Shown: one piece after another, positions 1,829 to 59,129 of the stretch
Layout of the letters: every line of letters begins with the position of its first letter
Numbering within the stretch: position 1 is the first letter of the stretch
NCBI GenBank assembly: GCA_051294905.1
Contig: CM119371.1
Span: 12,276,001 to 12,340,000, forward strand
Source: Botryllus schlosseri
Taxonomy: Eukaryota
Reading direction: 5' to 3'
DNA: 64,000 nt
Notes under the pieces: generated by a model
Databases searched by the model: none
What the model was told of the DNA's origin: nothing
Seen by the model: the letters and a program-made list of their open reading frames with translations, nothing else
Translations under genes and position numbers: made by a program

Positions 1829-2216
1829 AATTGCTTCCTAATGTTAAATGTGACTTGCAATGATTGGTTGTCTATATTTATAGGGTCACCGAATTCATTT
1901 CTCAGTGAAATACAAACGGAGTGTATTACATCTTGCGATATCGGAAAATAATATGGATTCGTTGATATCCAATTTTGCGACATGGTGTTATTTTGTAACG
2001 GGATGAGAGGAGTAAATTGGCTAATGTGTCTCCGACCAATCGTGGGTTGATAATATTACAATAAACAAACAAATATCGTCCTGGTATAGGATTGGTCAAT
2101 GTCATATTCATCTCCATAAGCGCTATCTCACGGTATCTCGTAGAGATTTCGTTAACAGTGGACAGCGAGTGCTGGAAACCTATATCATTCCTAGAATTGG
2201 TCAGCGTTAAAATCAT
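1825..2216 (-). pseudogene. Minor capsid (penton-like) paralogue C, short (~130 aa), one frameshift
   Basis: Reads YLFVYCNIINPRLVGDTLANLL, then after a frameshift NPYYFPISQDVIHSVCISLRNEFGDPI...VTFNIRKQL*. Confidence 0.8.
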
Positions 2217-4941: not shown

Positions 4942-5032
4942 TTCTAGTTCGCTGTAGAGTTCTGTTTAAAAATTTGATGGTGTATTTTCAAAAATTGACA
5001 TACTAGCATTGGACGGTAAAGTTAGCAGCATT

Positions 5033-5266
5033 TTATTGTATTCTCAGCGCAGATGGTTGTGGGAGTAAATATCCTAGACAGCTCGATAACAGCGTTAAAT
5101 ATATTTCGCGATCGGGTTTCACAGAAATTTGATATAATGAAAAAATGATTATTCCGACTAACATAAAAATTTGTACGACAAATGCACACTGATTTTTTAT
5201 TTCAAGCTTGAATTCAGTAACGCGACTTGTCGTGGACTGGGAATCCATATTTACAATATAAAACAT
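5033..5266 (-). CDS. Small two-TM membrane protein typical of animal Mavericks, 77 aa
   Basis: Two hydrophobic segments end in LLSSCLGYLLPQP. It lies between the integrase and the penton. Confidence 0.7.
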   Translation of the reverse strand: MFYIVNMDSQSTTSRVTEFKLEIKNQCAFVVQIFMLVGIIIFSLYQISVKPDREIYLTLLSSCLGYLLPQPSALRIQ

Positions 5267-5269
5267 TAC

Positions 5270-6334: not shown

Positions 6335-6677
6335 GGGGCGAAGCGATTTTAGTTGTGGGTCTAGCAGGTGACTGGTTCGGTACGGGGATCTTTGAAGATT
6401 CGGGTTTGATTTTTATCATATGTCGTAACGCATCCAATTCAGCATTAGAAAACAGGTTCGGTTGATCTGGTACATCAATTTTCATTGGTTGATTCAGAAC
6501 ATCGTGTCTGTTCTGGAACCGATTCAACGCGTCGTTATATAACGCTAATTTTTTATCCCGCGGAATATTCATTTGTAATATTTCATATATACGTTTATCG
6601 ATGTCTGAATTCAGTTTTTGAATGTCGACATGGTTGATTGGATTCGGCGTGACGTAAATTTTCTTGAAATGTGTCAT
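6270..6677 (-). CDS. Conserved Maverick helical protein with basic tail, 135 aa
   Basis: Contains SDIDKRIYEILQMNIPRDKKLALYNDALNRF. This pattern is typical of the Maverick ORF upstream of the integrase. Confidence 0.6.
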   Translation of the reverse strand: MTHFKKIYVTPNPINHVDIQKLNSDIDKRIYEILQMNIPRDKKLALYNDALNRFQNRHDVLNQPMKIDVPDQPNLFSNAELDALRHMIKIKPESSKIPVPNQSPARPTTKIASPHVTTKRRRSIKTPSRFKWSVY

Positions 6678-7026
6678 TTCTTAAATAAATTCCCTAGTAA
6701 TCCTTTAACCACTGGAAGTATACTTGATATTAGAGACATAAACATACCACCATGTTGATTAACAACAAGATTCTTTTTACGTCGAAATGAAACGTCTTTG
6801 TTGGTAAGCTTCCTCAAGATGTTTCTATGGTAACACAATCGTTTCTTCTGAGACGGTGACAGTGGTATATTTCCGTTTAATAAATTCTTTGCACACTCAC
6901 AAATACAACGTATTAGACCTTCACTAGCCCCAGATCAAATTTCCTTGCGTATCGCGGGTTTAGCTTGGTGTGCAAGAATGCTAACGTCGGCAAATGGTCT
7001 CGTGTTCGTCGGGGGATTCGTGTCAT
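6674..7026 (-). pseudogene. Small basic protein with C-terminal amphipathic helix (putative membrane-lytic peptide precursor); not in the ORF track
   Basis: Manual translation gives MTRIPRRTRDHLPTLAF/fs/...EI*SGASEGLIRCICECAKNLLNGNIPLSPSQKKRL...HGGGMFMSLISSILPVVKGLLGNLFKK*. Confidence 0.8.
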
Positions 7027-7057
7027 TTTGAAACCAGAACAGCATACACCCCGGTAT

Positions 7058-7666
7058 TTATAGCGGTTGAGTGTAAATAGTCAATGTTTCGCCTGGAAAT
7101 ATATTGGTCATAGCCCGTCTATCATCATGGCACTCTTGCGTGAGATCGAGGAACAAATACGAATGAGGTCTCTTGACAGCGTCTCTATAACATTCTGTTC
7201 GAAACCTTGATTTTGGGTACATCTGACGACCCAACACGGATATTTGATTTTGATCTCTGGGATTTTTAAACAGGAAGACATACATAGCCGATAGACTGAG
7301 GTCGCGGGCTCCTTTACCCTGATGATGAAAATTCTGTGTGCAGAAAGCTATTGATTTGGCCCCGTGGTGACTTATACGTATAAAGTATTCTCCCAATTTT
7401 TCTGTCTGGGTCATAAAATCGTCAACTATTATCAATACATCCTCATTATTTGATTTAAGATCTTCCAAAATCACCAACCCGTTGTAAAATTCAACCTGCG
7501 GCATGTTCTCAAAAATACTCTGATAATTATTATAACAGTACACGATTCTAGAAATATTAGGTTTGGTCATTGAGGCTGCATTCTTGATCAGTTTAGTTAT
7601 GAAAGTAGTTTTACCACTGCGAGATGGTCCGGATAGGATGAACGAGAAAGGATGCTTCAATTCCAT
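7058..7666 (-). CDS. A32/FtsK-like genome-packaging ATPase, intact ORF of 202 aa
   Basis: Walker A is SGPSRSGKTT and Walker B is LIIVDD. RISHH and the arginine-finger region ARDLSL...FKNPRD are also present. Confidence 0.95.
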   Translation of the reverse strand: MELKHPFSFILSGPSRSGKTTFITKLIKNAASMTKPNISRIVYCYNNYQSIFENMPQVEFYNGLVILEDLKSNNEDVLIIVDDFMTQTEKLGEYFIRISHHGAKSIAFCTQNFHHQGKGARDLSLSAMYVFLFKNPRDQNQISVLGRQMYPKSRFRTECYRDAVKRPHSYLFLDLTQECHDDRRAMTNIFPGETLTIYTQPL

Positions 7667-7748
7667 GTTGCTGTTTATTCAAACTCGAAAAACGAATGTA
7701 TTTATATATATATCACGAGTCTGCGGACTGGGAAAATCCACTGTTGTA

Positions 7749-8177
7749 TTAATCTTCAAGTGAGATGTATAGTCCCAGCAAAGTTCGATTCAGCAGTTTG
7801 CCGCGTGTGACAAAGTCCTCATCACTGCCTTGTAATTTCGTCAAGGGTAGTTGCAAGGTCACGAAGGCTTTTTGAAGATCGTCGAGCAGTTGTTCCCAGT
7901 CTAGATATGAAATGATATTAGAGTTAAATTAGAAAGTGATTTGATGAAAATGTCTACCATGAGAACACAAAATCATACATGCTATATCACCATTGGAGCA
8001 TTGCTCTAAATCGTGGCGTTGGCTTGAAATGCATCGATTGTAGAATTCATTCGACATATCATGCCTCAAATACATGTCGACAAATTGAATGCGATCGTGA
8101 TACCGGCGCAGTGTCTTGTCGTGTAGTTGATCCAGGTTGGAACGTTGCAGTATAGATTTTTAGAAGTTAGTAGCCAT
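7749..8177 (-). pseudogene. Unassigned Maverick accessory ORF (~142 aa) with two in-frame stops
   Basis: The ATG at 8177 and the TAA at 7749 are in frame (143 codons). It reads MATNF*KSILQRSNLDQLHDKTLRRY...LGLYISLED*. Confidence 0.45.
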
Positions 8178-8321
8178 CTGTAAAACAAAACACAAATAGC
8201 CTACATTAACCATCCCAGTACAAAACTGGTCTTTAACCCGATCAGATATTACATTTGAACACCTAAAATTGATAAGCATTATCACTAAACAGCAAAATAT
8301 CACAAATTGGGGTCTGCACAG

Positions 8322-8939
8322 TAGGGTGGTTCAAAAATAACCTTTTTTCCTGAATCTTGCAGGTTACTTGATTAAATCGTTAGGTTGCCTTAAAAAACGA
8401 CGCACACCAAATTTGAATTCATTCCAACCAATTTTCGCGGATTTCGTAGAGTTTGAAAATTTTGAATTTGCCTAAAAATGCAAAAAAAAAAAATTTTCAA
8501 ATTTTTCTGCCAACCCCATGAAATTGTTGCGCTGTCTCCGAAAACAATGCAAAACAAATTTGACTCAATTCGAAGCCGTAGAAGTGGAGTTATTTCAGTT
8601 TTTCTTTGATAATTCTGGGATTATCCTTGATTGGTGGATCATCTCAGAATTATCATCAAAAAACTTGAATAACTCCGCTTCTGCAGCTTGGAATTGAGTC
8701 AAATTTGTTTTCCATCGTTTTTGAAGACAGCGCAACAATTTCATAAGGTTGGAAGGAAATTTGAAAAAAAAATTTTTTTGCATTTTTAGGCAAATTCAAA
8801 ATTTTCAAACTCTACGAAATCCGCGAATATTGGTTGGAATGAATTCAAATTTGGTGTGCGTCGTTTTTTAAGGCAACCTAACGATTTAATCAAGTAACCT
8901 GCAAGATTCAGGAAAAAAGGTTATTTTTGAACCACCCTA
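8322..8939. mobile_element. 618-bp fold-back MITE (hATm-like), almost entirely palindromic
   Basis: Begins TAGGGTGGTTCAAAAATAACC and ends with the reverse complement; the inverted arms are ~300 bp. It has a perfect 8-bp TSD, CTGCACAG, at 8314-8321 and 8940-8947. Confidence 0.95.
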
Positions 8940-9470
8940 CTGCACAGTTATAGTTATCGGGGAAGCCATCGTTTCTCAATTCAGAAGGTTGTGTTCCAGC
9001 ATCACTGCTTTCCGAGTCTGAATGAGATCGTTTTCGAGAGTTGGCAGCACGATGCTGATCGAGAAAGAACTGCAAGGAACGACCACGCATAGAATTCTTG
9101 AAGTTGACTCTTTTTTCCTCCCTATCGTAAAGTGGAATCCAAGTCCTGGTTTTACCCAAAACGACATAATTTGTCAGCTTGGCTCGATAGAAAATGTCTT
9201 TGTGATCGCTCGGTAGCTTGCGGTCTGGGAATCGAAGCTGTAGCAGTGCTTCCATGCATATTTCTCGAATAGAGTTCCATCTTTGCTCGAGCTGATTCAG
9301 GCGCTCTCTGGTCGGATATCGTACCGGTGAGTGGATCGTCCTGGGTGCCGATAATAGAGTGTTGCGTTAAATCCTGTCTCAACCCAATGGTTTGCTTATG
9401 CAAAGTATCCAGATCTAGCTCTATTACAACCGATTTGATGAAAGAACTTGCACTATTCATCTGCGAAAAC
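8940..9470 (-). pseudogene. Unassigned Maverick accessory ORF remnant(s) downstream of pPolB
   Basis: The open frame reads ERLNQLEQRWNSIREICMEALLQLRFPDRKLPSD...RKRSHSDSESSDAG...NYNC. It is cut by the MITE at 8939, and the upstream part is frameshifted. Confidence 0.4.
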
Positions 9471-12400
9471 AAGAAAAAACATGATCAGAAATACACAAAA
9501 GCAAGTACATTACAGATTCACCATCGTCCAGGACATGACGCTTGGCGTAAAAATAAGACAAGGTATCGCGATGCTGTTGGTACGTGTAAATACCGTGATT
9601 ATGAACCCTGAAACCTCTATTATGACCTCCCATAGGCTTTTGAGATGTCAATACTTCAAGGAATGTTTCAAAATTTACTTGACCAGATTTCTGAAGACCT
9701 TTCGAGGCATACTTTTGTTTTGGACCATCACAAAAGTAATTTTTTTATTGGAGACCACAAAATGCAGTACCGTCCTCGTATTCGACCTTGAACAAACCCG
9801 GTTGCCGTAGAAAGTATGCATAAACATCTTTACAGCATTGTCTTGTTCTATCGAATGAGATTGGGTTGGACAGGAACTCATTTTTATGTTCGTTACAAAA
9901 ATAGCGTGGGAACCATTTTTCATAATTCAGATAAAATTCAGATCTTGTTTCTGGGATTAGCATATCACCGAAAGAAGCTGAATGCCCGAGATGGATCGAG
10001 CCTGTGTCGCACATAGCCGCTGTCCATTTCCTGTCGTCAAAGTACGTACAGAGACAGTCATAAAAAACGATAGTAATTGCTGTTTCGCGTTTTGATGGAC
10101 GAACCACCCGACGTGAATACAAGTATTCCATTTTATGTTTTTTTAGGCCTTTTGGTTACTTCATATAAATTAGAGCTCATCTCTTCTACATTCACAAAAA
10201 CCGATCATTGACATATCTCTGCAATTGACTTTTATCACAAAAAAATGGTTCGTTTAAATTTGAGGGGGTTCATTATCATCTTCCCATATATGACATTGCC
10301 TGAGAGCTTATGAGTCAAGGCAATAATTTCTTTGTCGGGATCCCGGTCACCCAACCGTCTCGCGTCAGAGACAGTTTTTGCGAACCCTTCAAAACAAGTT
10401 TACTTTGTAAACTCGATTGCCTCGTATATTCGTGAAACTATGAGACCATGTTCTATATACCATTTTATCAATATCGATGACAAAAGAATTTTCTGGCCAT
10501 AGTACGAAGCAACCAACATACGGCGTTGGACTTGATAATAGGTTGTGATCAATAGCAAATTGCTTCATGTGACCTTTCAAATCGTTACGTGAGACAAGGG
10601 TGTTTTTGAATATTGGACACAGTTCAGAAAAATATCTTTTCAAATAGGAAGGAGTGTAAATATCAACCAATAAAGCCCAAAAGAACGTTCCATCTAACAC
10701 CATTTCAATCAACTTATGAGCTGTTAGTGACTTGTTGCGAATCAATCGAGGTCGAACACTATTTATAAATTGAGCGATTTCAGAGTTTTCACGTTTAGCG
10801 ATATCCCAGTGACATTCCCACATCATGATAACACGATGCTCTAGGCTTCTGTAATATGAATATGCAAAGCGGCATTTACTGTGAGAATGGAAGAAACACC
10901 CCAGAAACGATAACACAACGCCTCGACCCGATGAGTCACGGTAGAATGCATCTGCAGGGTACCCCTTGGAACCTATCCTTACTTCTGACCCATTGAAAGC
11001 ATGGTGGACATGTACACCATGAACATGAGAATAGTACTGTATCCATTCACGTGCTTTATGACCAAAGGTAGGAGCAGTCTTGACCGGTTTAAATTTAGAA
11101 CACTCATTATCAAGGCTTTTCGAATGAATGGGATACCCTGCGGGTGACGCAAGCGAAATTGCTCGAACGTACATCGAATTGCAATCCATTTCTGTTATAT
11201 ACTGCGTTATTTCCGCGTCTTTACCATAGAAAAGTTGTTTTATGCGAGTTACACCTTTTTTTATATATCTATTGAAGATGATTGATGGTCCGCCAACAAG
11301 ATTTTCACGAAAAAGTAAAGCTAGATCTTTATGCTTTTCACTGAACAAGGTAAAGCACCTTGGAATGGAATTGAATATATGCCTCGAAACAACACCCGGC
11401 AGCGAGACAGCTTCTTTAAATATATCCACATTAAATTGAGACTTGAAAGAGTCGAATTGCTTTTCTAGCCCTTCAATGAAGTATTGAGTGTCAATTGCAT
11501 TGTACCATTTTCAGAGGTGGTCAGAGTAGTCAATAAATCTACTCAAGTAGAAGTAGAAGTAGCGACGAAAAAATCTACTCAAGTGCGAGTAGAAGTACTT
11601 CTTCTTTAAGCAACCTTAAACTACTTGAAGTAGAAGTAGAATTGACTGACTTTAAAAGTACTCAAGTAAGTAAGTAGTTGTGAAAACGATCCTAATTCGT
11701 TCACATGGATTGTAAAAAGGTGCAAATTGAGCTATGCGATAAGTGACGAGCTTGATTCATATTGATACATACCAGCAGTTATCCAATTTTCGATAGCATA
11801 ATCATTCGTCCACATCGTGGGATGAAAATGATAGCATTGATATGGAAATGCGATGGTAATCCTCTGTTTTCTCGAACAGCACGTTTAAGAAAATAACATG
11901 GTGTGGCGCCATTCCCCATATCATAAGGCCCGTAGTTTAGTCGAAGAGCAATACGGAGAAGTTGTATAGGATACGGTGTAAACACTTTGCACGATTAGTA
12001 AACGTTGATAAAAATTATTGTGGACTATAAAAATGCCATATTGTGTGGCTTCATTTCCAGAAATTAAAGGCATTACTACACCTGCGTTTATACTTCAACA
12101 TGTATGTTATCCAGAAAAAAGAACTGATAATAATTATAACTCAAAGTATATGATACCGGGAATTGAAAGTGAAATATAAATACTACTTCTGAAAGCCGAA
12201 CATGTATTTCATGTTTTTAGTCCAGAAAGTTTCAAAGAACCCACTCTTCCTGATTTGGACACGCCATGGACATGCTAGATTACGATATGACAAGTAAATG
12301 CTAGATTGCGAAACATCAGTTTCAAAAGTTCTTATGAGCCAAATGTACTGTGATGAATTATTTGATATGGGCGAAGGGCGACAATGTGGTGCGAACGGAA

Positions 12401-14483
12401 CCACGCCAATCCTCTACCTAAATTATATTCACGGATACTTTGGTGAAATCATTCTGGTCACTCCGTATATCCACTGCGCGCGAAGCGCGATGAAAATTCT
12501 GGGCTTTACTAAAATTTTATGAAAATTAAATGTTGATACTCCGTGAAAACAGCCCCGAAATTCCTCAGGCTATCTTCCTGATTGGAAGATTGAACTACTT
12601 CTACTTGACAAACTGAAAATAGCGAAAAGTAAGTCAGTAGATCACAAAATATTAAGAAGTAGAAGTAGCGAAAATCAGATCTACTTGAGTAAGTACCAGA
12701 AGTAGAGGATAACTACTTGAGTAGTTCAAAAAAGTAGAAGTACTTCGTTACTGACCACCTCTGACCATTTTAGATAGTCACGAAGCGATGTCATATTATG
12801 ATCATTCCAAACCTTGAGAAAGTTTTCATGATCGGCTTTCGATATATTACAACGTTTTATCGAGCTATAAAATGACTGATGAGTCCGGAGCATAGGGTAA
12901 TCCAACAGTTCAATACTAGTCAGAAATTCATATGGAAAATGACCCTTTGTACCACCACATTTGAACGCTTTCAGATATTTTTCATAAGAAAAACCAGGTG
13001 CCAAGTAATTGACAATATCAAGGAAACGAAGTCTGTTCAAGTTCAAGTCGTATCTACCGCCATTTAAAGATATAACTGGTATTTGCCTTAGATAACACAT
13101 GAATTCATCTTGTAAACATTCCAATGGTAAAGGCTTGTCCGAGGGGTCTAATACTTTCATTTCCGCGATTTTAGATTCAAACAAATCCAGATATTGACGG
13201 TATTCGACTAGCAACAGACTGAAGGATCGACTCTGAATTGTATGAAAAATTTCTACCATCTCTTCACACAACTGATTCGGGTCGCCATTCGGAACAATTA
13301 CTTGTGGTTACAAATATCCATCCACATTTGATGATATACTAACTGAAATTGGAATATGCTTCCACTCGTAAGTCGTTTTAGCCGAGGGATCAAAATCACA
13401 TTTTTGAAACATACTCTCGATATCGAAGGCGATCCGATATTTTAAAAAATGTAAATGATTTGGGACAATTATGCCTTCAATCTTCATTCGTTCAAATGTC
13501 GTCAAAGCTGGTCTATATATCCCACCCGGAAAAATCTCGACTGGTTCAGTGATGCAGTTGTGTCTGGTCAATTCATATTCAAGATCGAAAAATTTTCCAC
13601 AAGATTCACAATGATAGCTTTCGAGGTATCTGTTGATCTGAGTTATCAAGCAAGCATGAGAATTTTCGAGGTGTAAATAAACAGGAGTGCCTACATAAGT
13701 ACTACGTCGGACAGCAATAGCTTTACCATCGGTCTTACGATAGACAGATATCGCTACATCAAGCAATGTCTCGATGTCAGGCAACATCTCAAAAGTTACA
13801 CCACCAAAAACGTTCACACCATAAACCTGGGTATACTGTTCAGCCAATGATTTCGCATCACGATCGAGTGAGTGCCCAATACAACGAAATACACACAGAT
13901 TATCATTATACCGATTACGATTTTTATCGTAAAGTAGTGTCATGACACATTTCGATTTTGTAAGCCACAGTGGAAGTTTTACATCAGCACACCCTATCAA
14001 TAACCGATCGCTAGGGAATATGTAAAACTGTATATTTGTTAGACAAACAGGCTGCGATTTAGTATCCGGTCGGGCTTTACGCAATATATCAAATGCAGTT
14101 TCCCATTTAATGGATTCAACAAATTTTTCAAACTGTATCAATGATGAAATAGCCAATGGTATATCCAGAACACGATCGATATTTGACGATGCATGAAAAT
14201 AACGATATCTTAGAGTCTCGGTGTGGTATAGAATACAACCATATGAATAGTTGACTTTAAATCTATATGATTCAGAAAAGAATATCGCTTCGATGTCCTC
14301 GTAAACACCCGAGAGTTGACGATTTATAATCCTAATTTTGTACACCACTCGAGATCTGCCTATATTTGCTACATACGATTTTATGGCTTGCCAGTTCTGT
14401 GTTAAAATTTCTTGGCGTTCATCACCAATATCTGGTGGAAATTCATCTTCCTCACGGATACGGTGTCTTCTGCGACGGTTCAT
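9457..14483 (-). pseudogene. polB: Protein-primed family B DNA polymerase (pPolB), fragmented, with hAT insertion
   Basis: It has a C2H2 finger (CESCGKFFDLEYELTRH), an exonuclease motif (IAFDIES), SLNGGRYDL, GHFPYEF and FRENLVGGPSIIF. DCNSMY is motif A. An internal Vsr-like nuclease reads FLGCFFHSH. Motif C is degraded to CDTGS. PGLFKVE and the C-terminal NRGFR...YTYQQ.R..LSYFYAKRHVLDDG are also present. Confidence 0.95.
11512..12763 (-). mobile_element. Non-autonomous hAT element (family CAGAGGTGGTCA), copy 2, inserted in pPolB
   Basis: It has the same TIRs as 2942..4243 and a perfect 8-bp TSD, ACCATTTT, at 11504-11511 and 12764-12771. Confidence 0.96.
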
Positions 14484-14872
14484 CTGTAACATTTGTATTC
14501 GATTTCAATTTCACACTCTGTATTCTAGTAATTAACAAGATAGTAATACTTACTTGTATTTTTTTCTTGAAATCTTGAGTTCTTTTCACCTAGTAAACAA
14601 AGAAACAACCTTCCTCAAATTATGTTCACCAACCTGAGGTAGTAAAAACAGAGAACTTACCGATGCAATAAGTTCGGTGATTGGACTTGATTCTTTCTCT
14701 TTATCTGTTTCGATGAAGCAAGAAAACATCACGTTAACACAAACTTTAGTTTATTTAATTAGATCAGTGTATACTTACACGTGTATTGTAATATATCCAC
14801 GAGCGCAGATTTCACATCTTCTCGCTGCGACGTCCAGGTGGAAAAGACCGATTTGACTGCGTCGAGGTTAAT
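14484..14872 (-). other. Putative spliced leader exons of pPolB (three ~70-nt GT-AG introns)
   Basis: GTAAGT donors lie at 14778, 14660 and 14553, and YAG acceptors end at 14705, 14590 and 14484. The intervening exons (94, 44 and 36 nt) join into one open frame with the pPolB ORF. Confidence 0.6.
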
Positions 14873-15082
14873 CTAGTGCGAGCACCATCTAGTGCTCACG
14901 ATTTTCAGATTGTTTGTAAGCCTATTATCTGTAATTTCATACACAGCACATGAACATTCACATTCACACAATAAATACATTACACTGAATCACAAATATA
15001 TTTCAAGGTGGTTCTAATTGTTAAGAGCTGGTTCAGGAATTGGTCGGTTGCATCGTTCAGTTGTTTTTAAATCTGATCAAGA

Positions 15083-15886
15083 TCACTTGCGTTCAATAGC
15101 CGAAGCCAATAGCTTTTTTATTTCAAGAATGATTTTGTGCAGGGAAGGTTTCTTCTTTTCTGTAAGGGAATCAATGAAACCTAGAATCATGCCTAGGTGT
15201 GGTATGACCACATCAAGAGTCTTGAGATGGTCTCGAATATTGTTGGCGGTGCACAGACATATTTTCTCCTCTTGTCGTCTCCCTCTCGATGTCTTCGCCC
15301 GATCTTCATCTTAGCCGAGTTTCACCTGGTTAAGAACCAAAGTTTTTTGTTTCTATTTAGAGAGACGTATCTTTTTACATGGAGGTGGACTGGTTTGTTG
15401 CGAGGTTGTGGGTACATCTCGCTTTCTAGAACTTGATGGTTTCTCGATTGGGATCTGTGGTTTTGGTAGACCGGAAAATAACCTTCGAGAAGTCGTCGGT
15501 TTTTCAGATGGTACCGTGGATCGAACTCTAGATTTTGGAAAAATCTTACGAGGAGTTGCCGGTTTCTCAACTGGTAACACAGCTGAAGTTGTCGGTTCAT
15601 CTGGAAGGGGTAAGTTCAAAGCCGAGGTTGTCGGGTTGTCAACCGTGACTTGGTTCGAACCACGTGATTCCAACCATGCCTGTAGTGTGATGTCACGGTG
15701 AGGCGGTTGGTTTTCGATAGGTGTCGTGGAATCACACTCAACGACCTCTGTCGTTGAAGTAACGAGGTCTTCGGATAGGAGGGCCTCCAAAATATCCGCA
15801 TCTTCTTCAAATTGCAGTTCAAAAGAATTAGGTTCATACCCGATGGTATTAAATCTGTTCAACTGAGCCTGGGTCATGATTAACAC
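15083..15886 (-). pseudogene. Acidic, Ser/Thr/Pro-rich disordered protein with NLS-like motif, frameshifted
   Basis: The acidic N-terminus reads FELQFEEDADILEALLSEDL, followed by imperfect (E/D)KP(T/A/S)(T/S) repeats and PPPCKKIRL. It continues after a frameshift to ...LASAIERK* at 15083. Confidence 0.5.
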
Positions 15887-15963
15887 AAATTAAAATCGAG
15901 GTATACTGATCGACGGATGATATTCGGTATGAGCGAGTGGGATTTACCAGTTTACTGAGGACC

Positions 15964-15995
15964 TATTTATTCAAAACTACTTCCTCTTTCCCGCC
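15964..15995. promoter_or_regulatory. E2F-type site (TTTCCCGCC, 15987-15995) plus TATA-like TAAATA on the minus strand in the divergent promoter
   Basis: The consensus match is seen directly between the divergent ORFs starting at 15886 (-) and 16133 (+). Confidence 0.4.
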
Positions 15996-16132
15996 ATCAG
16001 TCCCCTTCTTCCTATTTGGTATCGTGTTACTCTGTTCATTATAACAACCTTTTATTCATTCTAATTTCCGATGTATGATCACCTAATTACCGGAATTATT
16101 TTTACAGTTTCTGTTGTCAATAACTACACAAT

Positions 16133-16465
16133 ATGAACTCAACTCATACCCGAGTGATTATAGAAAATTATCTACTTCACCATCACCATTTACCTGTCTC
16201 TGATTTGAGCGAAACAGAACAGTTGGTTCACGATATCGTTGATTTAAACATATCTGATCAAATTGTTGAGAGCATCGAGAAATGTGATTTCACATCACTA
16301 ACCAACACGATTCTGGGATACGGTGTGGACTGGAATGGTGTTATTTGTATTGTTGCGATCACAGCTATGAAAAGTGATGTTCATACTATCTCATTGTACA
16401 CAGATGCATCATCGAAATTCTTGAATACACACTTTATCTCACTGACAAATGATTGGGTATGCTGA
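16133..16465 (+). CDS. Putative divergent Bcl-2-like protein, intact ORF of 110 aa
   Basis: DFTSLTNTILGYGVDWNGVICIVAI resembles BH1 (F..[13 protein letters not shown]). KFLNTHFISLTNDW resembles the YLNDH...W approach to BH2. This is an alignment by eye only. Confidence 0.5.
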   Translation: MNSTHTRVIIENYLLHHHHLPVSDLSETEQLVHDIVDLNISDQIVESIEKCDFTSLTNTILGYGVDWNGVICIVAITAMKSDVHTISLYTDASSKFLNTHFISLTNDWVC

Positions 16466-16582
16466 ATTTCAGACTACACAATCATAAAACTATCATTATG
16501 ATTCCATTTACTGAATTCCTGCAGGGATTATTTCAAACCCAGTCTGTTCAGGCGATTTATCCAACTTCGAAACCGAGTAACT

Positions 16583-16616
16583 ACGCGTTTATGGTCACGT
16601 GACTAGGTCTATAAAA
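16583..16616 (+). promoter_or_regulatory. Promoter of the OB-fold gene: ACGCGT, palindromic E-box GTCACGTGAC (16594-16603), TATAAAA (16610-16616)
   Basis: The motifs are seen directly, 39-72 bp upstream of the ATG at 16655. Confidence 0.55.
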
Positions 16617-16654
16617 TACGAGTAACCCACGACAATGATCATTATCTGGACATC

Positions 16655-17256
16655 ATGGCAATGGGGAGTATATAAAAATTGACCATTGGGAAATCATCGG
16701 ACCTGCGAATTGCAGTCAAGTTTGTTTCCTCCCCGAAAAAGGGGCTCGTTAGTAGTTACCTGAAAGGTGTATTTATAGACAACGAGGACAATACTATACC
16801 CTTCACTTGTTTCAACCAAGAACTGTTCAAAGCCATCGAAAAAGCTTTTAGGAAACGCAAGCGACTACTCATTAAAACAGCCTGGACTCGACTCGATAAG
16901 TTCACGGGAGAACCTACTTTGCTAATCGGTCGAAGTTCGTCTGTTACTATTCATGGCACATCAAAACACACCCCGGACGAGTACCCCGTGGTAAGCTGTA
17001 ACACTATAGGCAGCGAAAAATATATTTCAATCAACGCGGTATGTATCGATCACGAGGAAAAATCCATCCCTGTCAATGGCGAAGACCTCAAACTACATAG
17101 TTTTACGTTAAGCGACGACACCGGAACTGTCAAACTCGATCAATGGACCTCGCCTGGTTTAAAAAAGGGAAAAAGTATGCACTAACGCGCGTCAAAAACC
17201 ACGAAGGAAGATTAAAGATTGACCAATTAACTCGAATTCTAGAGTTAAAAGAATGA
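16655..17256 (+). pseudogene. Tandem OB-fold ssDNA-binding protein (RPA-like), one nonsense codon and one frameshift
   Basis: It starts MAMGSI*KLTIGKSSDLRIAVKFV. OB1 includes VFIDNEDNTIPFTCFN. OB2 includes FTLSDDTGTVKLDQW, then after a frameshift GKKYALTRVKNHEGRLKIDQLTRILELKE*. Confidence 0.75.
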
Positions 17257-19566
17257 TATGTATGTGTGTCTACTGTTTCACAATACACAATGGTTGATGC
17301 ATATTTTCGTGTCATCTGTGATTCATGATATAGGCCTACTCAACACATTGAGTCAGTTTTGCGCTGAGCGGTTGTATTTGGTTCGTATTGTGTACGCTCA
17401 CGGATTGCTTTTCGACAACCTGTTGTACGGGAAACAATTCGCGATATAACCACTATAGTAATTCAGTGGACAGGATACCATAGTCATTTGTCCCAGCGGA
17501 ATATGTAGGTCACTATACATTAAAAACACCTGTTTTCAAAACCGATCGTGGAAAATCAACCATATGCACGTTATACAATGTAATTACTTCGACGAAATAC
17601 ACAATCGCGTCCATGAAGCACCACAATGACGCTTTTCCGAAGCTCCATAGCCCGATTTTCGACTGCTAGCTAGCTCAAACTGCACCGTTTCTGGTTTCGA
17701 AATACAACATTTGTGACTTCCGGTATTTTACGAATCACCAGCGATCGATTATACTACTGACATATGTGAGGATTGGTGTGAATGAAACCAGTTAACAATG
17801 TTTCTATGTTTACGATTGATTTAAATTATTACGTGGAATAAATATTATTTTTTGTACTCCAACTTTGTAATTGTGTAATAGCAACACATACAGTCGGCAG
17901 CTTGTGTTAGCAACGTAATTCAATGCGTTCAAGCAAACATTTGACTTAATCCGCCAAGTATTTCCTGCTTCTCATTCTCAGAGAAATTATTGCCCACCTC
18001 TAGCTTCGTGGTTCTCAAGTAATTAAAGGTTAACAACGATACTGAACTGGATTTCATTCTCCTGGGCAACGCATTAATTTTCATTTTATCTAAAATATCA
18101 GACATGAGTCGACATTTCAAATTGACGGGGTTTCGAGTTTGAAATGGGACAGATTTCGATCACAAAAAACTCACAATGGCTACGACACTGATAGTAATGA
18201 TGGCTCTGAGCTAGCAATTGCTACACATTCAACAGAACAGCGGTATCACGATTCACGCAAAACGACGTCACATGTGTTCAAGTTAAGTTGTTCGGCGACT
18301 AACCTTTTTTCAATAGTGCAACTAGAACTAGAACTACTGGACTTTTAAAATCTAGATCTAAAACCGGAACTGGAACTATTCACTTTTTAATATCCGCAAC
18401 TGCAACTAGAACTAGAACTTGTCCTACTCACTTTTAAAAATCTGCATCTAGAACTACAACTATCCAATCGTAAAATCTGCAGCTATAACTGCGCAAAACT
18501 CCGTTAGTTATAGTTGACCGTCAACTACTAAAAGGATAGTTTGTACCAGTCTGATTTGAATAGGTTTATCAATTGAACGATAGCCTCAATACTGTTTGGA
18601 GTCAATAATTAGCCCCTTGCTGTCATATCGACATGGTTCCGCTTGGCTACATTCTCCAAATGTCTTATATTTTAGACCTATAATGGGCAGTGTTCGTACA
18701 TGTAATAGGGGCTGTTCGACTGTCTCTTCTAACATGCATGGGTGGCCCCAGCCATCTTCGTCTCAAGTTTTCAGATCAATTAAATGTGAATTAATATGGT
18801 GTTTAATACAATTACAAGCCCCGTTCGCGATTCGATTTCCCTGAGGTTGTCATAAGAAATAAATTTGGGCAATATACATTGAACATTGCTTAGGGAGAGG
18901 CAGGTGAAATTGAGGCAGTGATTTAATAAGTTGTAACTAACAATATTGACAATATATTAGAGTGGAGAAGATTAACATACCACAGGCCTAGATTAACCTC
19001 GTTGCGACAGACTTTCAAATACGGAATGGTTATCTGAAAGACATTCGCTAAAGGACGACGATTTCTCGTTATCAAATGAAGGAAGAAACAATTTATTGAA
19101 ATCAGAGCTGCTGTTGTATATTGAGCTATGTAGCAACGATAAAAATATCTGGCTGCTTTTCCTGTTTGCATTCGTCAAACCATGGTTTGGACTATTGTGC
19201 GATACCAAACGCATGCGGCCCGCAGACGTTTATTTTCCGGCCCGCAACATCTGCGATGTTTACACTAGTCAACACATGTTTTTAGGAAGACAAATTAAGT
19301 ATAGTGATGGAGGCTCTGAAGGGCACTGATTCCGAATATGGCCCTATTTTTTCAAATTGGCTCTTGTTTTGGAGATAACCCATGGGGCTGTTTCGACTAA
19401 AATCTCCCGTTTTCGCTGTAATCGCTAGATAGAAAATCAGCCCAGTCTTACGATAAAGTTTACAAATTCAGTCTACTTGCTATTGTTACACACAGAAAAC
19501 TCTTTCAAATCAAAATACAGCAACAGTACTGTATTCAGGGGTATTCAATTTATCATAGTTATGGAC

Positions 19567-20610: not shown

Positions 20611-20671
20611 GCTACGATCGTGTTGTATTTAAACTTTGACTTACTTCGTTTACCAATAATGATTGATACAG

Positions 20672-20866
20672 GTGACGATCAGTATCAACCTAGAGGCGAC
20701 AGAAAAGACGTGAACACGGTGATGAACTTTTATGGTCCAGCAAACATAGCAGGCGGGGACGTAAACACAGGAAATGCTATCGGAACCTGGAATGAAGGGG
20801 AAATTCACAACGAAAATCACGGATGCATCACACGAGTAACAGGAAAAAAAGTTGCAACTTCTGACG
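20672..20866 (+). CDS. Putative NLR N-terminal exon A (Gly/Asn-rich, amyloid/RHIM-like motif)
   Basis: The acceptor is ATTGATACAG and the donor is G|GTACTA. The exon is 195 nt, phase 1-1 and open: GDDQYQPRGDRKDVNTVMNFYGPANIAGGDVNTGNAIGTWNEGEIHNENHGCITRVTGKKVATSD. Its link to the NACHT exon is inferred from phase and strand. Confidence 0.55.
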
Positions 20867-21391
20867 GTACTATTTCAATGAAGAATTTGTTCTATCTTGT
20901 GGTTCTTAGTTGTAAATCGGGTCTTGCCCATATTTTGGTATATCGATCGCACATTCTAGTCCGTGACGCACCTGGTCTCACAGGCGGAAAGCGTCACGCA
21001 ACCTTTCATCAATAATAATAATTATTATTATAATAACAATAATGAAGATGAGACAAGAGCGGCATTGCGCGATGAAAGGAATTGCAGTAGACTCCGGTAT
21101 CGTGCATTTATGTGTATCTGCAGAAGAACATATAATTAGTCCGAAATATTCAGACGCGTTTATAGCATTAATGACAGACGTTTCCAAAGCTGTTGCATCA
21201 GTAATTCTGGATCAGTGTAATTCCTTTCTTAATCAACAGTGGTGGACCGGCGATTGGGGTGGTGGTGGCCAAGACTTCCGGGGAGGGGGGCGATATTTAT
21301 GTGATCGCAGCTTCTGGGGAGCTCCGTCCACATACTCCCCTTTCGTATCTATTGTTACCAACTTAGTTTTGGTGCGCTATATGGAACGGGA

Positions 21392-29838: not shown

Positions 29839-32776
29839 TTAATCATCTTACTTCAATGATCACGACCGCACTGGCTTGCTGATTATGTGCTTCTACTCAT
29901 TCAAGAAGTTTGCTTACGGCAATGATTTTGTCAGCGCATTGTGGGTTGGTGATATAATAATAAAATGTGACACCTGGTCAATAAATGTTTCAGTTTTAAA
30001 AGTTTGTAACGATATGTTTAGGGTTGCCATACGTCCGGAATGTCACTGCTAAAACTACGTCCGGGACGAATTCCTGAAATCTGTCTAAATGTCCGGAATT
30101 TTAAAGATTAGAAATCGGATCAAAATGTTTTTGTCAATTTTTGACAGATTTAGGCCACTTGAAATTTTCTTCACGCCACGCCATCAAAAATATGCAATCA
30201 AAAATTATTAAAAATATCCATCATTTACTGAAATAACTCTAATTTTAATCGCAAGTAGGGGAGAATGGTATATCACTGGAGTCGGTTGAAGCCATTTAGA
30301 TGCATTAGTCATAGATATTGGCCCGAAACCTGGGGTCGTCTGTCTTTAATCTCGGGTTCGCGAAGATGTTGAACGTAATCAGCTTACAAAATAGGCCGTG
30401 AGTTAGTCTGGGCAAAGGTGCTGACCGTTTTCAGTATTTAGCTTATCTAATTCTGAGGTGAGCCACAAAACATTTTCAAATAACAGATGGAGTCGCAATC
30501 ATGAATGGTTGAAAACCACCGGATGTGAAAACTGCTGGTTCTGATCTGCACATAGGCTAATAATTAGTGTTAATCGTGTGACATGACATGACTTTACGAT
30601 GCATAATCCCGATCCTCGTATTTTCGAATCATCGTCCTCCACCTCTAACTATTATCATGTGAGCGGAGACAGGATCACAATTTTATAGTAATACATAGAA
30701 GACGCAATATTATAGACTGATTTCATTCACAAAATTTAACGACCAGATGCATTTCAAAACCAGAGGTATATACTAAGGACCAAGAAGTTGCATCGATTTG
30801 TCTATGTTGAGCTCAAGATCAGTGTTTATTTGGACGGGAGGAGCCTGAAAAAATGTTCTTTCGATACTGGTTACAACACACAATCACCTAAATGTACCGA
30901 CCTAACATTATACCGGTTCCTGCTCCGTCTGGTGACCACCTATGGTCGATAGGCAAAGCTTTTCTAGTGTGACGTCATATCGTACTCGCCCAAACGTAGC
31001 AGACTAAAAGAATATCTTTTGTGAGACGCACACAGAAATTGTCATGGCTTTATTCCTTTGTGGATGCGCTGGGTGACATTTGCATAGTGGGCCCGGATTG
31101 GAAGGTCAGGCCCATCCAGCGCGGCTATTGACAATGGACGAATACCCTAAGTTTCGGCCAAGGTATTTCTATGGTATCACATCTCGTGGAGTTGCGTGTT
31201 GGCCGAAACTGTCTTTTGGTGTGTTGTGGGATCGTGGCGCGGTAATGACCGCTTCCGAAATGCATGTTTCCTATAAAATAGACTACGCAGGTTTTTCCTT
31301 GAAAGGAAGAGGTATGCATTTCAAACCCAGCTATTTGCTGAAGCAGGCGTCACCAACCGTTTTGAAACAAAAAGCCATTCTTGTGTAGTTGTGTACTGAT
31401 TATTGTGACGACCGACGGGTTACCACTTACTCCTGCCGTTTATCCGTGTTCAGTTGGATTTCTTCACTTAGAGTAAGACAATCTCACTCACCGGGACTCA
31501 CACCAGCTCTTCCGGGCTCAGTTGCGTTGCTGCAGTGCGCACGGAAGCGCCAATCTCCGCGTTGAGACTCGGGAATATTATCTATAGATTCCCATTCAGC
31601 CGCCGCGTGGGCGAAGACAAACAATGCCCCGAGCGACTGCGTTCGTATGTTCATTGTGGTCGGCCGACCCATGTTCAACTGCTACTCATATGAAACCAGC
31701 TTCAACTTTCAAATCTCTCATTTCGATATTTGCTACATCGCAGTGGTGGCCCTACGAACGGGGGGGGGGGGCAAGGCGACACTTACCGGGGGACCCTAGT
31801 TGTATCTAGCCGTAACTTATGGGGGGGGGGGGCTTCGCCCCCCAGACACCCCGTTTCCATATGTTATTATTATCTATATTTCACCACGGCAAGGTTTGGC
31901 CAGGTGCTGGATTCGGCCATGTCTATTTTGAATGTGTGCAAGGATATACTACATCAAAACTAAGTAACATTACCGCATGCATAGACGTGATGATTATCGG
32001 GATATGGTACTTTTGTCACAAATGCAGAGATTTGATGATGATTGACACATCTGTACGGAATCCTATTCTTGCTTTACACGGATTTGCATGTTTATTCGTT
32101 ATTATCATTGAAAAAGGCGCATAATCCAAATAGGGGGACCCTTCGACCAGGTTTTTTTTATTGAAACACTGTGAATTGACGTCACATATTTTACAACGGC
32201 AACATGGTTTCACAGTCCACGCTCGTCCTCAAACAAAACTACTCCATCAACTTCAAAATACATATGATTGTAACCTGTGTATAATTATCAATGATCAGCA
32301 GCCTCCTTTGGCACATGTAAGGATCAAGTTTGATGCAATTCGACATGCAGTGTATTAAAAATGAGAATTTATTTCTAGTTGTCCTTGCTCAAAACGTTGA
32401 TGGCAACGTGGAATTGAAAGTGACCGACCAAGGAAAAATAGAAATCAAACAAACCACACAAAACTTCATAACGCCACGCAATGAAGGTGAGTTTGGTTAA
32501 ATATTTCCTTGTTCGGACAGTTGTATATATGGGCGTTGTATTCAAATATATGCTATCCATCAAATATGCCCATAATGAATTGTATCGTTGCAGTGCCATG
32601 GCCGACTAATCCAAGCATCGTGCTGTGTAATTTGCGGCAATTCGGTGACATCGAATCCACGTAAAAATGCAGTAGTTTAGAATGTATGATGCCCCGTATA
32701 GCATGGTCTAATTCGCACATTTACGTCTCGCGATACCAGTACGGTAGCCTAGCGACGGTCATCCGTACGTAGGCTC

Positions 32777-34538
32777 TAGTGCGGGGCGGATCGACAAATT
32801 ATTTGGTCCGACTCCGATCCTGTTCCACAATCCTCTGGTCCGACTCCACTCCGACCGGATACTTGAAATGAGCGATATCCGATCCAAAAAAACTCCGATA
32901 ATATTCATGTACGACTAGCTATTAACAACAAATGCAGTAGCAGGCAATGGGTTCAGGTTATATTAAAAAAAAAGGAACATGGCATTGAAACTCACAGCTT
33001 TGTATGGAATATGAAAACTACACAAACACTACATAAACACTCCCAGGCTGGTATCAAATACAAAAAGACAAGGTAGGCTACATGGTAACAAAAACTCACA
33101 GGTTTGTATGGGATATGAAAACTACACTCACAGGCTGGTATCGAATTAAAAATGACAAGGTAGACTATATGCGGTCAACGACTTGCAACGAGATATTGTA
33201 TCAGAAACTTTTTCTATCATGTCAGTATCAGACAGAACTATAGGGCAGTGACTATGCACGGACATCGAGGGCTGTAACGTGTGCTGCAGGACAGTCGACA
33301 ACATGTGGCAAGCACATGTCAGTCTCTGATGTGTTGTCAGTGCAGATCTTATATTGCTTGCGTCATCTGTTACAAAATAACAGAAGTCTAGCAGAGAGCT
33401 AGATAGTCCAATCTCAGTGCAACATTCCTGGATTTTATTTAGCAGATTTACACCTGATTTCTGCTCCTCAAACTTTGTTGCAGATATTGCTACAGAGTGC
33501 AACTTTTCCTCGCGAATGTAATGGGCTGTCAGTGACATGTACGGTAATGTCTGCTATTGACATCAGCCCACATATCCGTGGTGAGCTCAATCATCCCATA
33601 TTCGCCAATAGTCGCTTTCACAATGATAGATATTTTTTCCTTCTCCAGTGCAGCACGGCTTAGAACTTCCCTTTTAACGGTATGTCTGGATGGGATTATT
33701 TCTTCTGCATTCATTCGACCATACACCGACCCTATATCCATAAATGTTTGAGCAAGTTCGACAAAACCATTACCCTCTAAAGATCGGAATGGTCTCAAAT
33801 CCTTTACAATGAATGATGTGGCTGCTTTGACCAATTGTACCTTGGCCTTAGTCGGAGCGGAGCAGATTGTTTTTGTCAGAAAGGATGACATTGAACGTTG
33901 GCCCGCTGATGGTATGACTTTCGATACACTGCATCTGGTTTTGATATGAGTGGCTTAATGTGTTGTGCCACTGTTCTTTCTCTCATGCTTGAATGTCAAA
34001 CCACCATGCCGACAGAGAACAAATCCTGAGTAGTCACCGCCCTCCTCACTTCACTGGTGCCAGGGCCAGTTGGTAAGGCAAAACTCTTCCACACCTCACT
34101 TTTATTTCCCTTCACATCAACCGCGTTTGGTTTCCCTTCTTCATACAAGGCTTTTGATATTTTCGATGATCTTATAATAATAGGATTACCAGCCATCTCA
34201 CTGCACGCTAAGGAGACCGCATCGACCACATACAGTTGAAACAAGGATGTTGGAGACTGTAATAAATGCTTAGTCATATAATAAATGCTGCGATTGAATG
34301 AGTTAGCATAAATTTGGGTCATGGCTCAGTGATTTTACAGATATGGCTTGGTTATTTTCTCACTGTGGTCGGAAGTTACTATAGTCATGCTGTGGCCGGA
34401 TCAAAAATATACTGATCCGGCTCCGATCCGGCTCCGGCCGTAGCAGAAAAAATACTGATCCGGCTCCGATCCGGCCCGACCAAAATTGAAAAAATCCGGC
34501 CGGATATCCGATCCGGCTCCGGTCCATGCCCCGCACTA
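32777..34538 (-). mobile_element. Internally deleted Hermes/hobo-like hAT element (second family)
   Basis: The TIRs are TAGTGCGGGGC / GCCCCGCACTA, with a perfect 8-bp TSD (GTAGGCTC) and CCGATCCGG-type subterminal repeats. Confidence 0.95.
33146..34196 (-). pseudogene. Hermes-like hAT transposase, N-terminal half, frameshifted
   Basis: Contains KSEVWKSF plus a BED remnant, KDLRPFRSLEGNGF, IPSRHTV, LTTDMW, SLTAHY, FVTDDASNI and CACHML (CxxH). Confidence 0.92.
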
Positions 34539-44964: not shown

Positions 44965-44998
44965 TCCAATATATAATTAATTTTTTAGTAAGACTATA

Positions 44999-56979: not shown

Positions 56980-58386
56980 GAAAATTTCTTGCTAAATTCA
57001 CGGAGACCGTTAGACGTCTCTCGTGGAACAATGTACAGGGTAAAGTCCTAGAATCGTACGAAGATTTGTCGGAACCAGACACTGAGTTTTACCCGCAATT
57101 GAAAACTGGATTTAAATTATACAAAGGAGAATATTTGCCACAAGAAGGATTCAGTGCCCACGGCAACCCCAAAACTGGACGTTTTATAGACTACAAAGGT
57201 TTTCTAAAGCGCATCCAAGAAAAACACGCTAGACCTTGCGCCATCATCGGACAACCGGGTAGTGGCAAGACCATCATGATGAAAAGATTAGCAAAGAAAC
57301 TTATCATTGCAAATAATCTCCACGATCAAGAACATTCACTATGGAAGAAATTTGTTAAACTATTTCGCAATGACGCCAAACAATATAACATCATCATGCA
57401 CATGAACATCAGAGATATTCCTGATCAGGAGAACGTTACTTTAGCAAATGTTATATTTAGCCCCAAAGTCACTAAGTTGTCAGTGATTGAGCTAGGATGT
57501 GGTCTTAAGGCAATACTGGATGGGGTGATAAAAATTATCATGTTTTTCGATGGATTGGATCAAGCTACATGGGATCCGATATGCGATAGAATAATTGGGC
57601 CATGGGAGGTGTCAAACACACGTACGATATTTGGTAACATACTGGCAGGATATCTTTTACCTGATGTTCCTATTATCATATCATCGAGGGAGCATTCGGT
57701 AGCTCGTCTGTCCAATAATATGCGACCAAATTTTATGGCAGCTTTGGTGGGATTTAGTGAAGGGGAAGCGGAGAAAATGTATTGTGAGTTGATGGGGCAT
57801 AATTCAGAAAATGATTGGCATGAAATGAGGTTATCTAACCCCGCAATGCACTATATGTGTCTCACACCATTGTTTCTGGTATTTTATATGATAACCAGGA
57901 AACGAGCTCCATCGCATCCTCCCAATTGTGCATCCGGAGTGATGGTCACTATAATTCAGATTTTCTTGGAATGTGAGAATACGAGAAACATCGACAACGT
58001 CATTGACGTAAACGACGTCATCGACAAATTAAAGGTAATGGCATGCAGTGGTACCATGAAGCAACAGGTAACATTCACCGACAAAGACCTTTCCAAATAT
58101 CGCCTTGCGTACAAGGATATAAGTGATGTTGTCATCAAAGTGCCTGGACTGACGATTCTAGGACAGAAAATTATAGCTGGGATGTATAGATACTTTTTCA
58201 GTCATCAAACTCTTCAAGAAGTTTTAGCGGCACTTTCCGTGGTGGGAATGAGACTGGATGATTTCAAGCATATCGTTGATCGTGAATTCCACAAACCCTA
58301 CTGGGCCGTTGTGCGCAATTTCACGAGTGGTATTCTAAAAAACGAAAGTGTTAGATCCGATATCAGTTCTGCAATTCTCAAGCCAG
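56980..58386 (+). CDS. NLR exon C: NACHT NTPase, HD1 and winged helix
   Basis: Walker A is GQPGSGKT and Walker B is MFFDGLDQ. It also has IIISSRE, VGFS, TPLF and FSHQTLQEVLAA. The acceptor ends at 56979 and the donor is AG|GTTGGT; the exon is phase 1-1 with no stops. Confidence 0.93.
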
Positions 58387-59129
58387 GTTGGTATTTCATT
58401 GTACTTCGAATGTCAATATGTTAGTATACGCCCCTTGTTCCCATCCTGGGGAAAAATTCCCGGAATTTAGCAATTTTAGTGTGAAGAATCTGCCTATATT
58501 TAATAGGAGAAAGTATACATGGACTGATCAAAGTTTTCATATTTCGTAACAGAACCGTAAGGTATGAAACCTGATCCGACGTGGAAATCTATCCGAGGGT
58601 TCCACTTGCTCAAATGGGCTCTAAACCTACTGTTACAATGATCAAGTCATGCGGTCAGTTATTCAAAAAATAATAGTCCCGCGCTGGTTACGTGGTGAAA
58701 AGCTATGTGCAAATTGCGTACTCACAAGATATCCAAAAAACGCATGCGATTCACTTTTTTTGCAATACTGCAGAGAGTTGCAGAAATGTGGTAACTTCAC
58801 CGTGAGCATCCGACTACACTAATAGCTCCCATAGTGGGGTCCACGAGACACATTTTTAGGAACGCGTAACACCTTCCAAAATTATCACGACCAAGAAAAT
58901 TTTGAATTTCGGATTTCTGGAATATATTGATCTTCAGACAACTTAATATACCAACCAAAACGCGAAAGTCGCCCGAAATTATTCGGTAATCAACATAAAA
59001 TATAGTTTGTGGTGAAAAATATTCAATTTGAAATTTCAGTCACTGCATTTCTATGTTTTATTGTGCGCATGCACACCGTGGAACAAAATAAGCATGATTT
59101 CAACGAAATAAGTCGATTTGTGCTCATAA

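Follow-up and report, generated by a model that had tools for sequence, protein, structure and literature searches.

The open segment at positions 20672-20866 of a 64,000-nucleotide stretch of Botryllus schlosseri DNA (the window) is probably the front part of a decayed motif exon that was split by a SINE and orphaned, and that most likely lies outside the mRNA of the NACHT gene found downstream. The exon family to which it belongs probably encodes real repeat units (rungs) that would act as a homotypic module. A sequence-only reading of the window had taken the segment, here termed exon A, for the N-terminal motif of an amyloid-signalling NLR that is spliced through a second exon (exon B) to the NACHT exon. 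This reading of the exon was right in part. Exon A is a real homologous coding exon, but it was mis-bounded and is SINE-broken and orphaned.

Exon A and the ancestral 261-nt exon

The window sequence contains an open frame of 195 nt in phase 1-1 that is flanked by AG at 20670-71 and GT at 20867-68. The borders, length, phase and translation (DDQYQPRGDRKDVNTVMNFYGPANIAGGDVNTGNAIGTWNEGEIHNENHGCITRVTGKKVATSD) were all found as first described, and an in-frame ATG is present at 20659, just upstream of the exon. Four paralogous exons (C3:14308348, C3:25478146, C17:2178233 and C1:1195856) were identified in a six-frame search of the species' own 495-Mb assembly. The closest paralog, C3:14308348, shows 81% nucleotide and 59% amino acid identity (E 2.1e-15), and the other three matches have E values of 3.7e-9, 0.003 and 0.03. 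Profile searches with these paralogs returned 11 firm family members followed by 3 weak candidates; the genome search uses a first-look filter, and the counts of motif exons and other family members are lower bounds. Because paralogous exons match in the same genome, exon A is by homology coding-derived, and a chance open reading frame is ruled out. No second motif exon was detected anywhere in the window by profile search, exon A being the sole motif match. The parts of the motif that are conserved across the family are V.NV.G and DV..G.AIGTLN.G.I.NEN.G. The pseudo-repeats that had been read as ending in NIAG and NAIG do not follow this pattern, the NIAG segment being variable or deleted in relatives.

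The 3' border assigned to exon A at 20866 is not that of the family. The paralog exons run about 75 nt further, to '...NC...AVDSG/GT' (a slash marks the splice junction), and the reading frame of all four paralogs continues for about 25 codons past the position of 20866 to a conserved '...NC...(D/K)(N/S)(A/I)AV(D/N)(S/P)-G/GT'. The sequence at the position of 20867-68 is GACAGTTCC, which lacks a GT, in the closest paralog and ATAGTACT in the next one, and DNA alignment shows the donor to be missing from the paralogs. Alignment to the paralogs gives an ancestral phase 1-1 exon of 261 nt composed of 20672-20884 and 21049-21096 (Table 1). The second part shares 61% of its amino acids with the C3 paralog tails over 28 residues.

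Table 1. Positions of the main features within the window (a slash marks a splice junction)
Feature	Positions	Strand	Details
Motif exon, 5' part of the ancestral exon	20672..20884	+	Acceptor AG 20670-71, phase 1; homology to paralogs
Core motif of exon A	20719-20823	+	
Cryptic donor GT (ACG/GTACTA) inside the ancestral exon	20867..20868	+	Donor of the sequence-only reading
SINE-like insertion, 156 bp with A/T-rich tail plus one copy of the 8-bp TSD	20885..21048	+	No counterpart in paralogs
Motif exon, 3' part (...RQERHCAMKGIAVDS-G), then ancestral phase-1 donor G/GTATCG at 21097-98	21049..21096	+	Aligns with C3 paralog tails
Candidate exon B, phase 1-1, one beta 'rung' (VLAQNVDGNVELKVTDQGKIEIK...)	32379..32486	+	Acceptor AG 32377-78 (tttatttctag/), strong donor G/GTGAGT
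Intact NACHT exon	56980..58424	+	Acceptor ...tttattcag/ at 56978-79, phase 1; Walker A GQPGSGKT; PF05729

The two parts of the ancestral exon are separated by a 164-bp insertion that is flanked by the target site duplication AATGAAGA at 20877-84 and 21041-48. The insertion shifts the frame and leads to an in-frame stop codon at 21013-15, so that the open reading frame ends at 21015. At least 181 candidate copies of the 156-bp insert were found genome-wide. Identities of 86-93% were obtained for the 40 copies that were scored, of which 39 start within three bases of the first base of the element. Because dispersed copies at this level of identity share a start at the first bases, the insert is classified from its sequence as a SINE-type element. 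Removal of the element by splicing as an intron was considered and rejected, since the sole AG near its end gives the wrong frame, with a stop codon about 30 codons on.

A separate observation concerns the approximately 30 nt that follow the ancestral donor (window 21097-21130 versus L003:1726-1765). These match at 27 of 31 positions and are more conserved than the exon is between distant paralogs. They may represent an intronic splicing element or coding read-through ('G-I/T-x-HLC-x-S').

The DNA homology of exon A to the closest paralog locus spans just 20612-21250, about 0.5 kb. Neither the window nor the 20 kb before it was found to contain counterparts of the exons that neighbour the paralog (beta-rich ZU5-UPA-like open reading frames upstream, helical ones downstream) or further rung exons of that locus. 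Between exon A and its closest paralog, dN/dS is 0.75 (dN 0.205, dS 0.273) and reaches about 1.1 in the motif core, compared with 0.38 between the two intact C3 paralogs, all of these values being indicative only at 86 codons. Exon A alone has changed at three sites that are hydrophobic or Thr in 10 of the 10 other members (V/I to F, I/T/F/Y to N and L/V/I to W). On these sequence comparisons, the copy looks to be drifting near-neutrally. Its closest relatives, the two C3 paralogs, follow ZU5-UPA-like modules and are not placed before NACHT. Exon A would derive from the subfamily that has its intact members downstream of ZU5-UPA modules and would have reached its present position as a piece of about 0.5 kb; the SINE would have split the copy later, and near-neutral drift would have come afterwards.

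The upstream part of the window is occupied by a Maverick/Polinton-like element (positions 1-17800, - strand) with open reading frames for a packaging ATPase-like protein, a split protein-primed polymerase, capsid-like proteins and others. It stops some 3 kb short of exon A, which may have been parted from its earlier neighbours by this element.

The NACHT gene and candidate exon B

The intact NACHT exon of the window matches PF05729 with an E value of 1.6e-12 and 48 bits (cutoff 26.7). The exon family comprises at least 201 candidates in the genome, and the 5' boundary of the exon is kept in paralogs. The best named relatives, in a database without this species' own gene models, are Styela clava proteins with 33-34% identity. 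Four paralog loci (C1:12468356, C1:17128332, C1:11594711 and C1:11431371) were examined; one paralog is intact at 88% identity and lies 135 kb downstream, and three at 77% identity carry 1-3 stop codons. Homology between paralogs reaches just 44 nt upstream of the exon, except for the 88% paralog, which aligns throughout. Within 1.5 kb upstream of the NACHT paralogs, no motif open reading frames were found. The identities and stop codons of the four paralogs suggest that the NACHT exon of the window belongs to a young, partly decaying NLR subfamily.

Exon A and the NACHT exon are 36 kb apart. The interval contains hAT-, Harbinger- and tnp2-like transposase open reading frames and a high-copy TIR element, and a DNA search with 46.6-57 kb was swamped by TIR transposon matches. 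An element of about 2.6 kb with terminal inverted repeats of about 210 bp is located at 52600-55240 and is present in dozens of copies at 93-97% identity genome-wide; it is a young DNA transposon family within the putative NLR intron. Two long intact open reading frames (744 and 310 aa), the first of which weakly matches Transposase_21/tnp2 (E 9.6e-5), are present at 42730-45931 on the + strand and probably belong to an autonomous DNA transposon within the same putative intron.

Exon B, which translates to VLAQNVDGNVELKVTDQGKIEIKQTTQNFITPRNE, lies between exon A and the NACHT exon, with in-frame ATGs at 32333 and 32345 just 5' of it. An independent tblastn match (E 0.008) was obtained between exon B and the rung-1 exon of a small-protein gene on C10. 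Exon B also matches a rung model with an independent E value (iE) of 5e-17, a value that is not independent evidence since exon B is one of the seven training rows of that model, the others being six rung-1/rung-2 exons. The acceptor of exon B is at the position homologous to the C10 rung-1 acceptor, five residues before xVxGNV. On C11, a NACHT match begins at C11:4787636, 2.8 kb downstream of a paralog of exon B (C11:4784692-4784844); the inferred start of the NACHT exon is about 2.5 kb from that paralog, and profile searches detected no motif exon on the C11 contig. From this sequence evidence, exon B is likely the NACHT gene's own 5' coding exon. The simplest gene model consists of a short undetected first exon, then exon B, then the NACHT exon. 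Exon A is probably outside this gene and out of order relative to its relatives, because a rung-1 exon precedes the motif exon in every resolved relative.

Expression was examined in four bulk RNA-seq runs (37 M records). The RNA depth was zero over 32170-32772 around exon B, and the reads in 31500-33500 fell on flanking transposon sequence alone. The gene containing exon B is silent or very low in the four RNA samples. A search of RNA run records yielded nothing for either exon A or the NACHT exon, small word shares being uninformative.

An alternative is that exon A functions with its GT at 20867 and is spliced to exon B and then to the NACHT exon at 56980, giving an NLR N-terminus with a two-rung motif and one more rung. 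Exons A, B and NACHT are all on the + strand, with transposons and nothing else between them, and all are phase 1-1 or phase-1 compatible. The phase fit noted in the sequence-only reading was found as described, with a phase-1 NACHT acceptor and a phase 1-1 exon B, but it is weak evidence because every exon of these families is phase 1-1. Two other loci have motif exons before NACHT exons, the cryptic donor G/GTAC resembles the native donors of the family (G/GTAT or G/GTAC), and translation of exon A could start at the upstream ATG. The native 3' third of exon A has been cut off by the SINE insertion, however, and the donor at 20867 is without a counterpart in the paralogs. The order A-B-NACHT would also invert the rungs, with the motif ahead of rung 1, and no motif exon was detected near the exon B paralogs (C11 and C1:2.64 Mb) or near the 88% NACHT paralog. 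The near-neutral exon has lost core hydrophobic residues, and the implied introns of 11.5 kb and 24.5 kb compare with 0.1-2.3 kb in resolved genes. This model of a functional, spliced exon A is very improbable. The claim that exon A is the N-terminal motif of this NLR is not supported and probably wrong: the exon is SINE-broken, orphaned and near-neutral, with three hydrophobic sites lost, and a better candidate 5' exon lies downstream. The preferred reading is that of an orphaned exon A upstream of an NLR gene whose first detected coding exon would be exon B.

Two points for annotation arise from this locus. A clean symmetric 'exon' can be the stump of an exon broken by a transposon, and phase fit among shuffled phase 1-1 exons is a poor guide to which gene owns an exon.

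The rung family in three gene contexts

Members of the rung family have been identified before NACHT domains, after ZU5-UPA modules (as these appear from language-model features) and in small proteins that contain rungs only. The rungs are about 20-30 residues long and rich in Gly, Asn and Asp, and each is encoded by its own phase 1-1 exon.

The first context is found on C16 and C1. On C16, the order is a rung exon (...IKGVTGDASITVKDKGQLHVHV-G), the motif exon (NPQQ...NIFNISGDYHVVDRHEDFRGSAVDTVNKGRIRNDNIDC...) and a NACHT exon that matches PF05729 (E 1.9e-12). The introns between them measure 109 nt and 669 nt, respectively, and all junctions are canonical and in phase 1. At C1:1.19 Mb, an interval of 9.4 kb that contains an LTR retroelement separates the motif exon from a downstream phase-1 NACHT exon. 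Judged by gene structure, the motif would stand directly before NACHT at C16 and plausibly also at C1:1.19 Mb. At the level of the family, the idea proposed for the window is partly supported by gene structure, the motif lying in phase before NACHT at two other loci; the motif matches no RHIM or HET-s models, and an amyloid nature of it is putative.

The second context is represented by the two C3 motif-exon paralogs, both of which are preceded by beta-rich open reading frames; the copy at C3:25.48 Mb carries 'HFSW'. In ESM Atlas language-model features, a 55%-identical homologue of the C3 beta-rich open reading frames resembles ZU5/UPA clusters (score 0.97, 195 of 256 features shared) and FIIND clusters (score 0.92). 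No Pfam or PDB profile match was obtained for a ZU5-UPA identity of the C3-type open reading frames, and their AlphaFold2 model (pLDDT 38.7) was too poor for a fold search. A homologue search with the ZU5-like open reading frame returned one unnamed homologue, and HFS is not conserved in the homologue P0011. On the model features, the open reading frames upstream of the C3-type motif exon look ZU5/UPA/FIIND-like. The C3:25479.4-25484.7 kb region also contains two paralogous helical open reading frames of about 205 aa (L008:5396-6025 and L009:50-667), which have no Pfam match and sit 1 kb and 5.7 kb downstream of the motif exon linked to the ZU5-UPA-like module; they may be additional exons of this gene or genes of their own.

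The third context consists of small-protein genes that end in the motif followed by a stop codon. Two are in tandem at C10:26.83 Mb and one is at C2:12.94 Mb. The encoded protein has about 130 residues and is composed of MANKF, FKGVGGNVKMTLNDEAKFEATVG, ...VKGDAEIDMSKTAIMEVHVG and ...VNDVGGDLKVN...DFSGAGIGTLSNGTLISN... in this order. Because MAFFT stacks the exons on one another as internal repeats, the small protein is a string of three to four related rungs with hydrophilic linkers, and the motif exon corresponds to the last one or two rungs.

Two further copies on C17 are intronless and align to a C10 gene in five blocks across four introns. They are located at L035:9557-9949 (C17:2336856-2337248) and C17:2260346-2260543, and their parents are the five-exon genes at C10:26827-26836 kb. 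One copy has an intact 130-codon open reading frame and the other has a premature stop. Both are on a 3-Mb contig, within about 160 kb of a motif-exon fragment at C17:2178152. Because the C17 copies are intronless and match a C10 gene exon by exon, they are processed retrocopies, and they establish that the parent C10-type gene is transcribed and spliced in the germ line.

No Pfam domains were found on the small proteins and no relatives in an atlas search, and there was no NACHT match near C10:26.83 Mb among the matches listed. A profile search of 1.84 billion representatives returned two short motif open reading frame fragments (P0001 and P0004) and bacterial noise, and the contigs of both fragments provided no gene context. 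The AlphaFold model of the small protein (pLDDT 37.5) was too poor for a fold search. A complex prediction with the C16 NLR motif exon and the C10 C-terminal motif gave 'no answer' (score 0.01), which speaks neither for nor against binding.

The sequence-only reading had implied a partner effector with a matching motif. Such a motif is shared with the terminus of a second protein, in that the small proteins of the C10 and C2 genes and the C17 retrocopies end in it, but these proteins consist of rungs and lack an execution domain. Neither an execution domain (in Pfam) nor adjacency to NLR genes (at the loci seen) was found for them.

The module turns up at the start of NLRs, behind UPA where a CARD or death domain would be expected, and in small proteins that contain nothing else. 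Because of this recurrence the rungs are read as a homotypic adaptor, possibly a cross-beta or beta-solenoid polymerising module, that would substitute for CARD, PYD or death domains. Rungs displayed by an oligomerised NLR, or by a UPA fragment after its release, would template or recruit rung-bearing partners. The motif has alternating hydrophobic residues, an invariant Gly, frequent Asn/Asp at the repeat ends and repeats of 20-30 residues. By analogy, this pattern and the lack of a confident monomer fold fit a stacking into beta-arches or a beta-solenoid like that of HET-s and RHIM fibrils, and the family may stand in for death domains.

The rungs could instead be a flexible linker, a small soluble beta-domain or a short linear motif for a globular partner, their spread being a by-product of the shuffling of phase 1-1 exons. 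The motif matches no RHIM, HET-s or other Pfam models and no PDB sequences, and the canonical RHIM Gln is missing from it. The small protein is without a confident predicted structure, and known death-execution domains were looked for on the small proteins and not found. This explanation is possible but rather unlikely, as the motif has been kept across three unrelated architectures, in two of them exactly at the CARD/PYD/death-domain position. Rung-only proteins exist and are retained as multi-exon genes, and alternating hydrophobics with invariant Gly/Asn at the repeat ends fit beta-arch rungs.

With the rungs read as a homotypic module, a more specific and tentative proposal is that sea squirts evolved or retained exon-encoded beta rungs that replace death folds. 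The rungs would be carried on NLR N-termini and on releasable UPA fragments, and the proteins of three to four rungs would be polymerising adaptors nucleated by those sensors, a templating similar to that of HET-s/NWD2 in a chordate. This full system is doubtful at present. If it were true, the window would contain two rung exons before one NLR, A being decayed and B live. If the tunicate motifs fill the CARD/death-domain slot in NLRs and in ZU5-UPA proteins, signalling by nucleated polymerisation would be wider in chordate innate immunity, and the motif-only small proteins would add to this picture. The rung family also supplies short, testable peptides.

Comparison with RHIM, FIIND/ZU5-UPA and HET-s-type systems

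NLRs that signal through amyloid-type motifs are an established finding in fungi and bacteria. Among animals, to our knowledge, NLR-type amyloid motifs are known solely as RHIMs, together with a bioinformatic report of an amphioxus RHIM-NACHT protein. The concept of a motif before NACHT is therefore already known in animals, and the tunicate family differs in the motif. The core tetrad of the RHIM is (I/V)-Q-(I/V/L/C)-G, followed by x-x-N, and RHIMs are carried by RIPK1, RIPK3, ZBP1 and TRIF, with the insect cRHIM in IMD and PGRP-LC. Many RHIM proteins have been described in amphioxus, including the RHIM-NACHT protein BF82280, and these RHIMs occupy CARD-type domain positions, whereas tunicates appear to be without RHIMs (Kajava et al. 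2014, PMC4262963).

The alignment of 11 rung-family members gives (A/S/G)(A/G/S/T)(I/V)(G/D)T(L/V/W)(N/S), with the tetrad Gln in 0 of 11 members and a Gly...Asn spacing similar to that of the RHIM. The proposed check against amyloid-motif models gave no Pfam match to RHIM (PF12721) for any of seven members (hmmscan, Pfam-A, E up to 10), and no RIPK1/3 was found in the PDB profile search. HET-s/HRAM (PF11558) likewise gave no Pfam match, and no HET-s match was found among PDB sequences. The internal pseudo-repeats of the rung family differ in length and sequence from the two 21-residue pseudo-repeats of HET-s. By sequence, the motif is neither a recognisable RHIM nor a recognisable HET-s motif.

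The rung family differs from RHIMs in the absence of the tetrad Gln and in its longer repeats (about 20-30 aa), each on one exon. It resembles them in that the motif is short, non-globular and reminiscent of a hydrophobic-x-hydrophobic-Gly-x-x-Asn pattern (AIGTLN versus IQIGxxN). Like the amphioxus RHIMs, it would take the death-fold slot in immune proteins of an invertebrate chordate, including the NACHT N-terminus, at times in arrays of two or three.

In FIIND-CARD proteins (NLRP1 and CARD8) and ZU5-UPA-death domain proteins (PIDD1, UNC5 and ankyrins), a death-fold domain takes the place that a Gly/Asn-rich exon has in the tunicate genes, whose ZU5-UPA identity comes from language-model features alone. 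As in those proteins, the relatives of exon A follow a putative ZU5/UPA-like module and would fill the CARD/death-domain slot. One copy (C3:25.48 Mb) has 'HFSW' at the position expected for self-cleavage.

The HET-s-type systems differ in several respects. The rung family has no sequence match to them, and its amyloid state is putative. At the loci seen, NLR genes and partner genes do not lie side by side, and the rung partners identified so far lack HeLo, SesA, PNP_UDP or other execution domains. The rungs nevertheless resemble HET-s-type motifs in their pseudo-repeats of about 21-30 residues, with Gly/Asn at the turns and hydrophilic linkers between them. As in the fungal and bacterial NLR-amyloid systems, the partner has more repeats than the NLR. 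As in HET-s/NWD2 (HRAM), PP, sigma and BASS, one motif would be common to an NLR, at its N-terminus, and to another protein, at its C-terminus.
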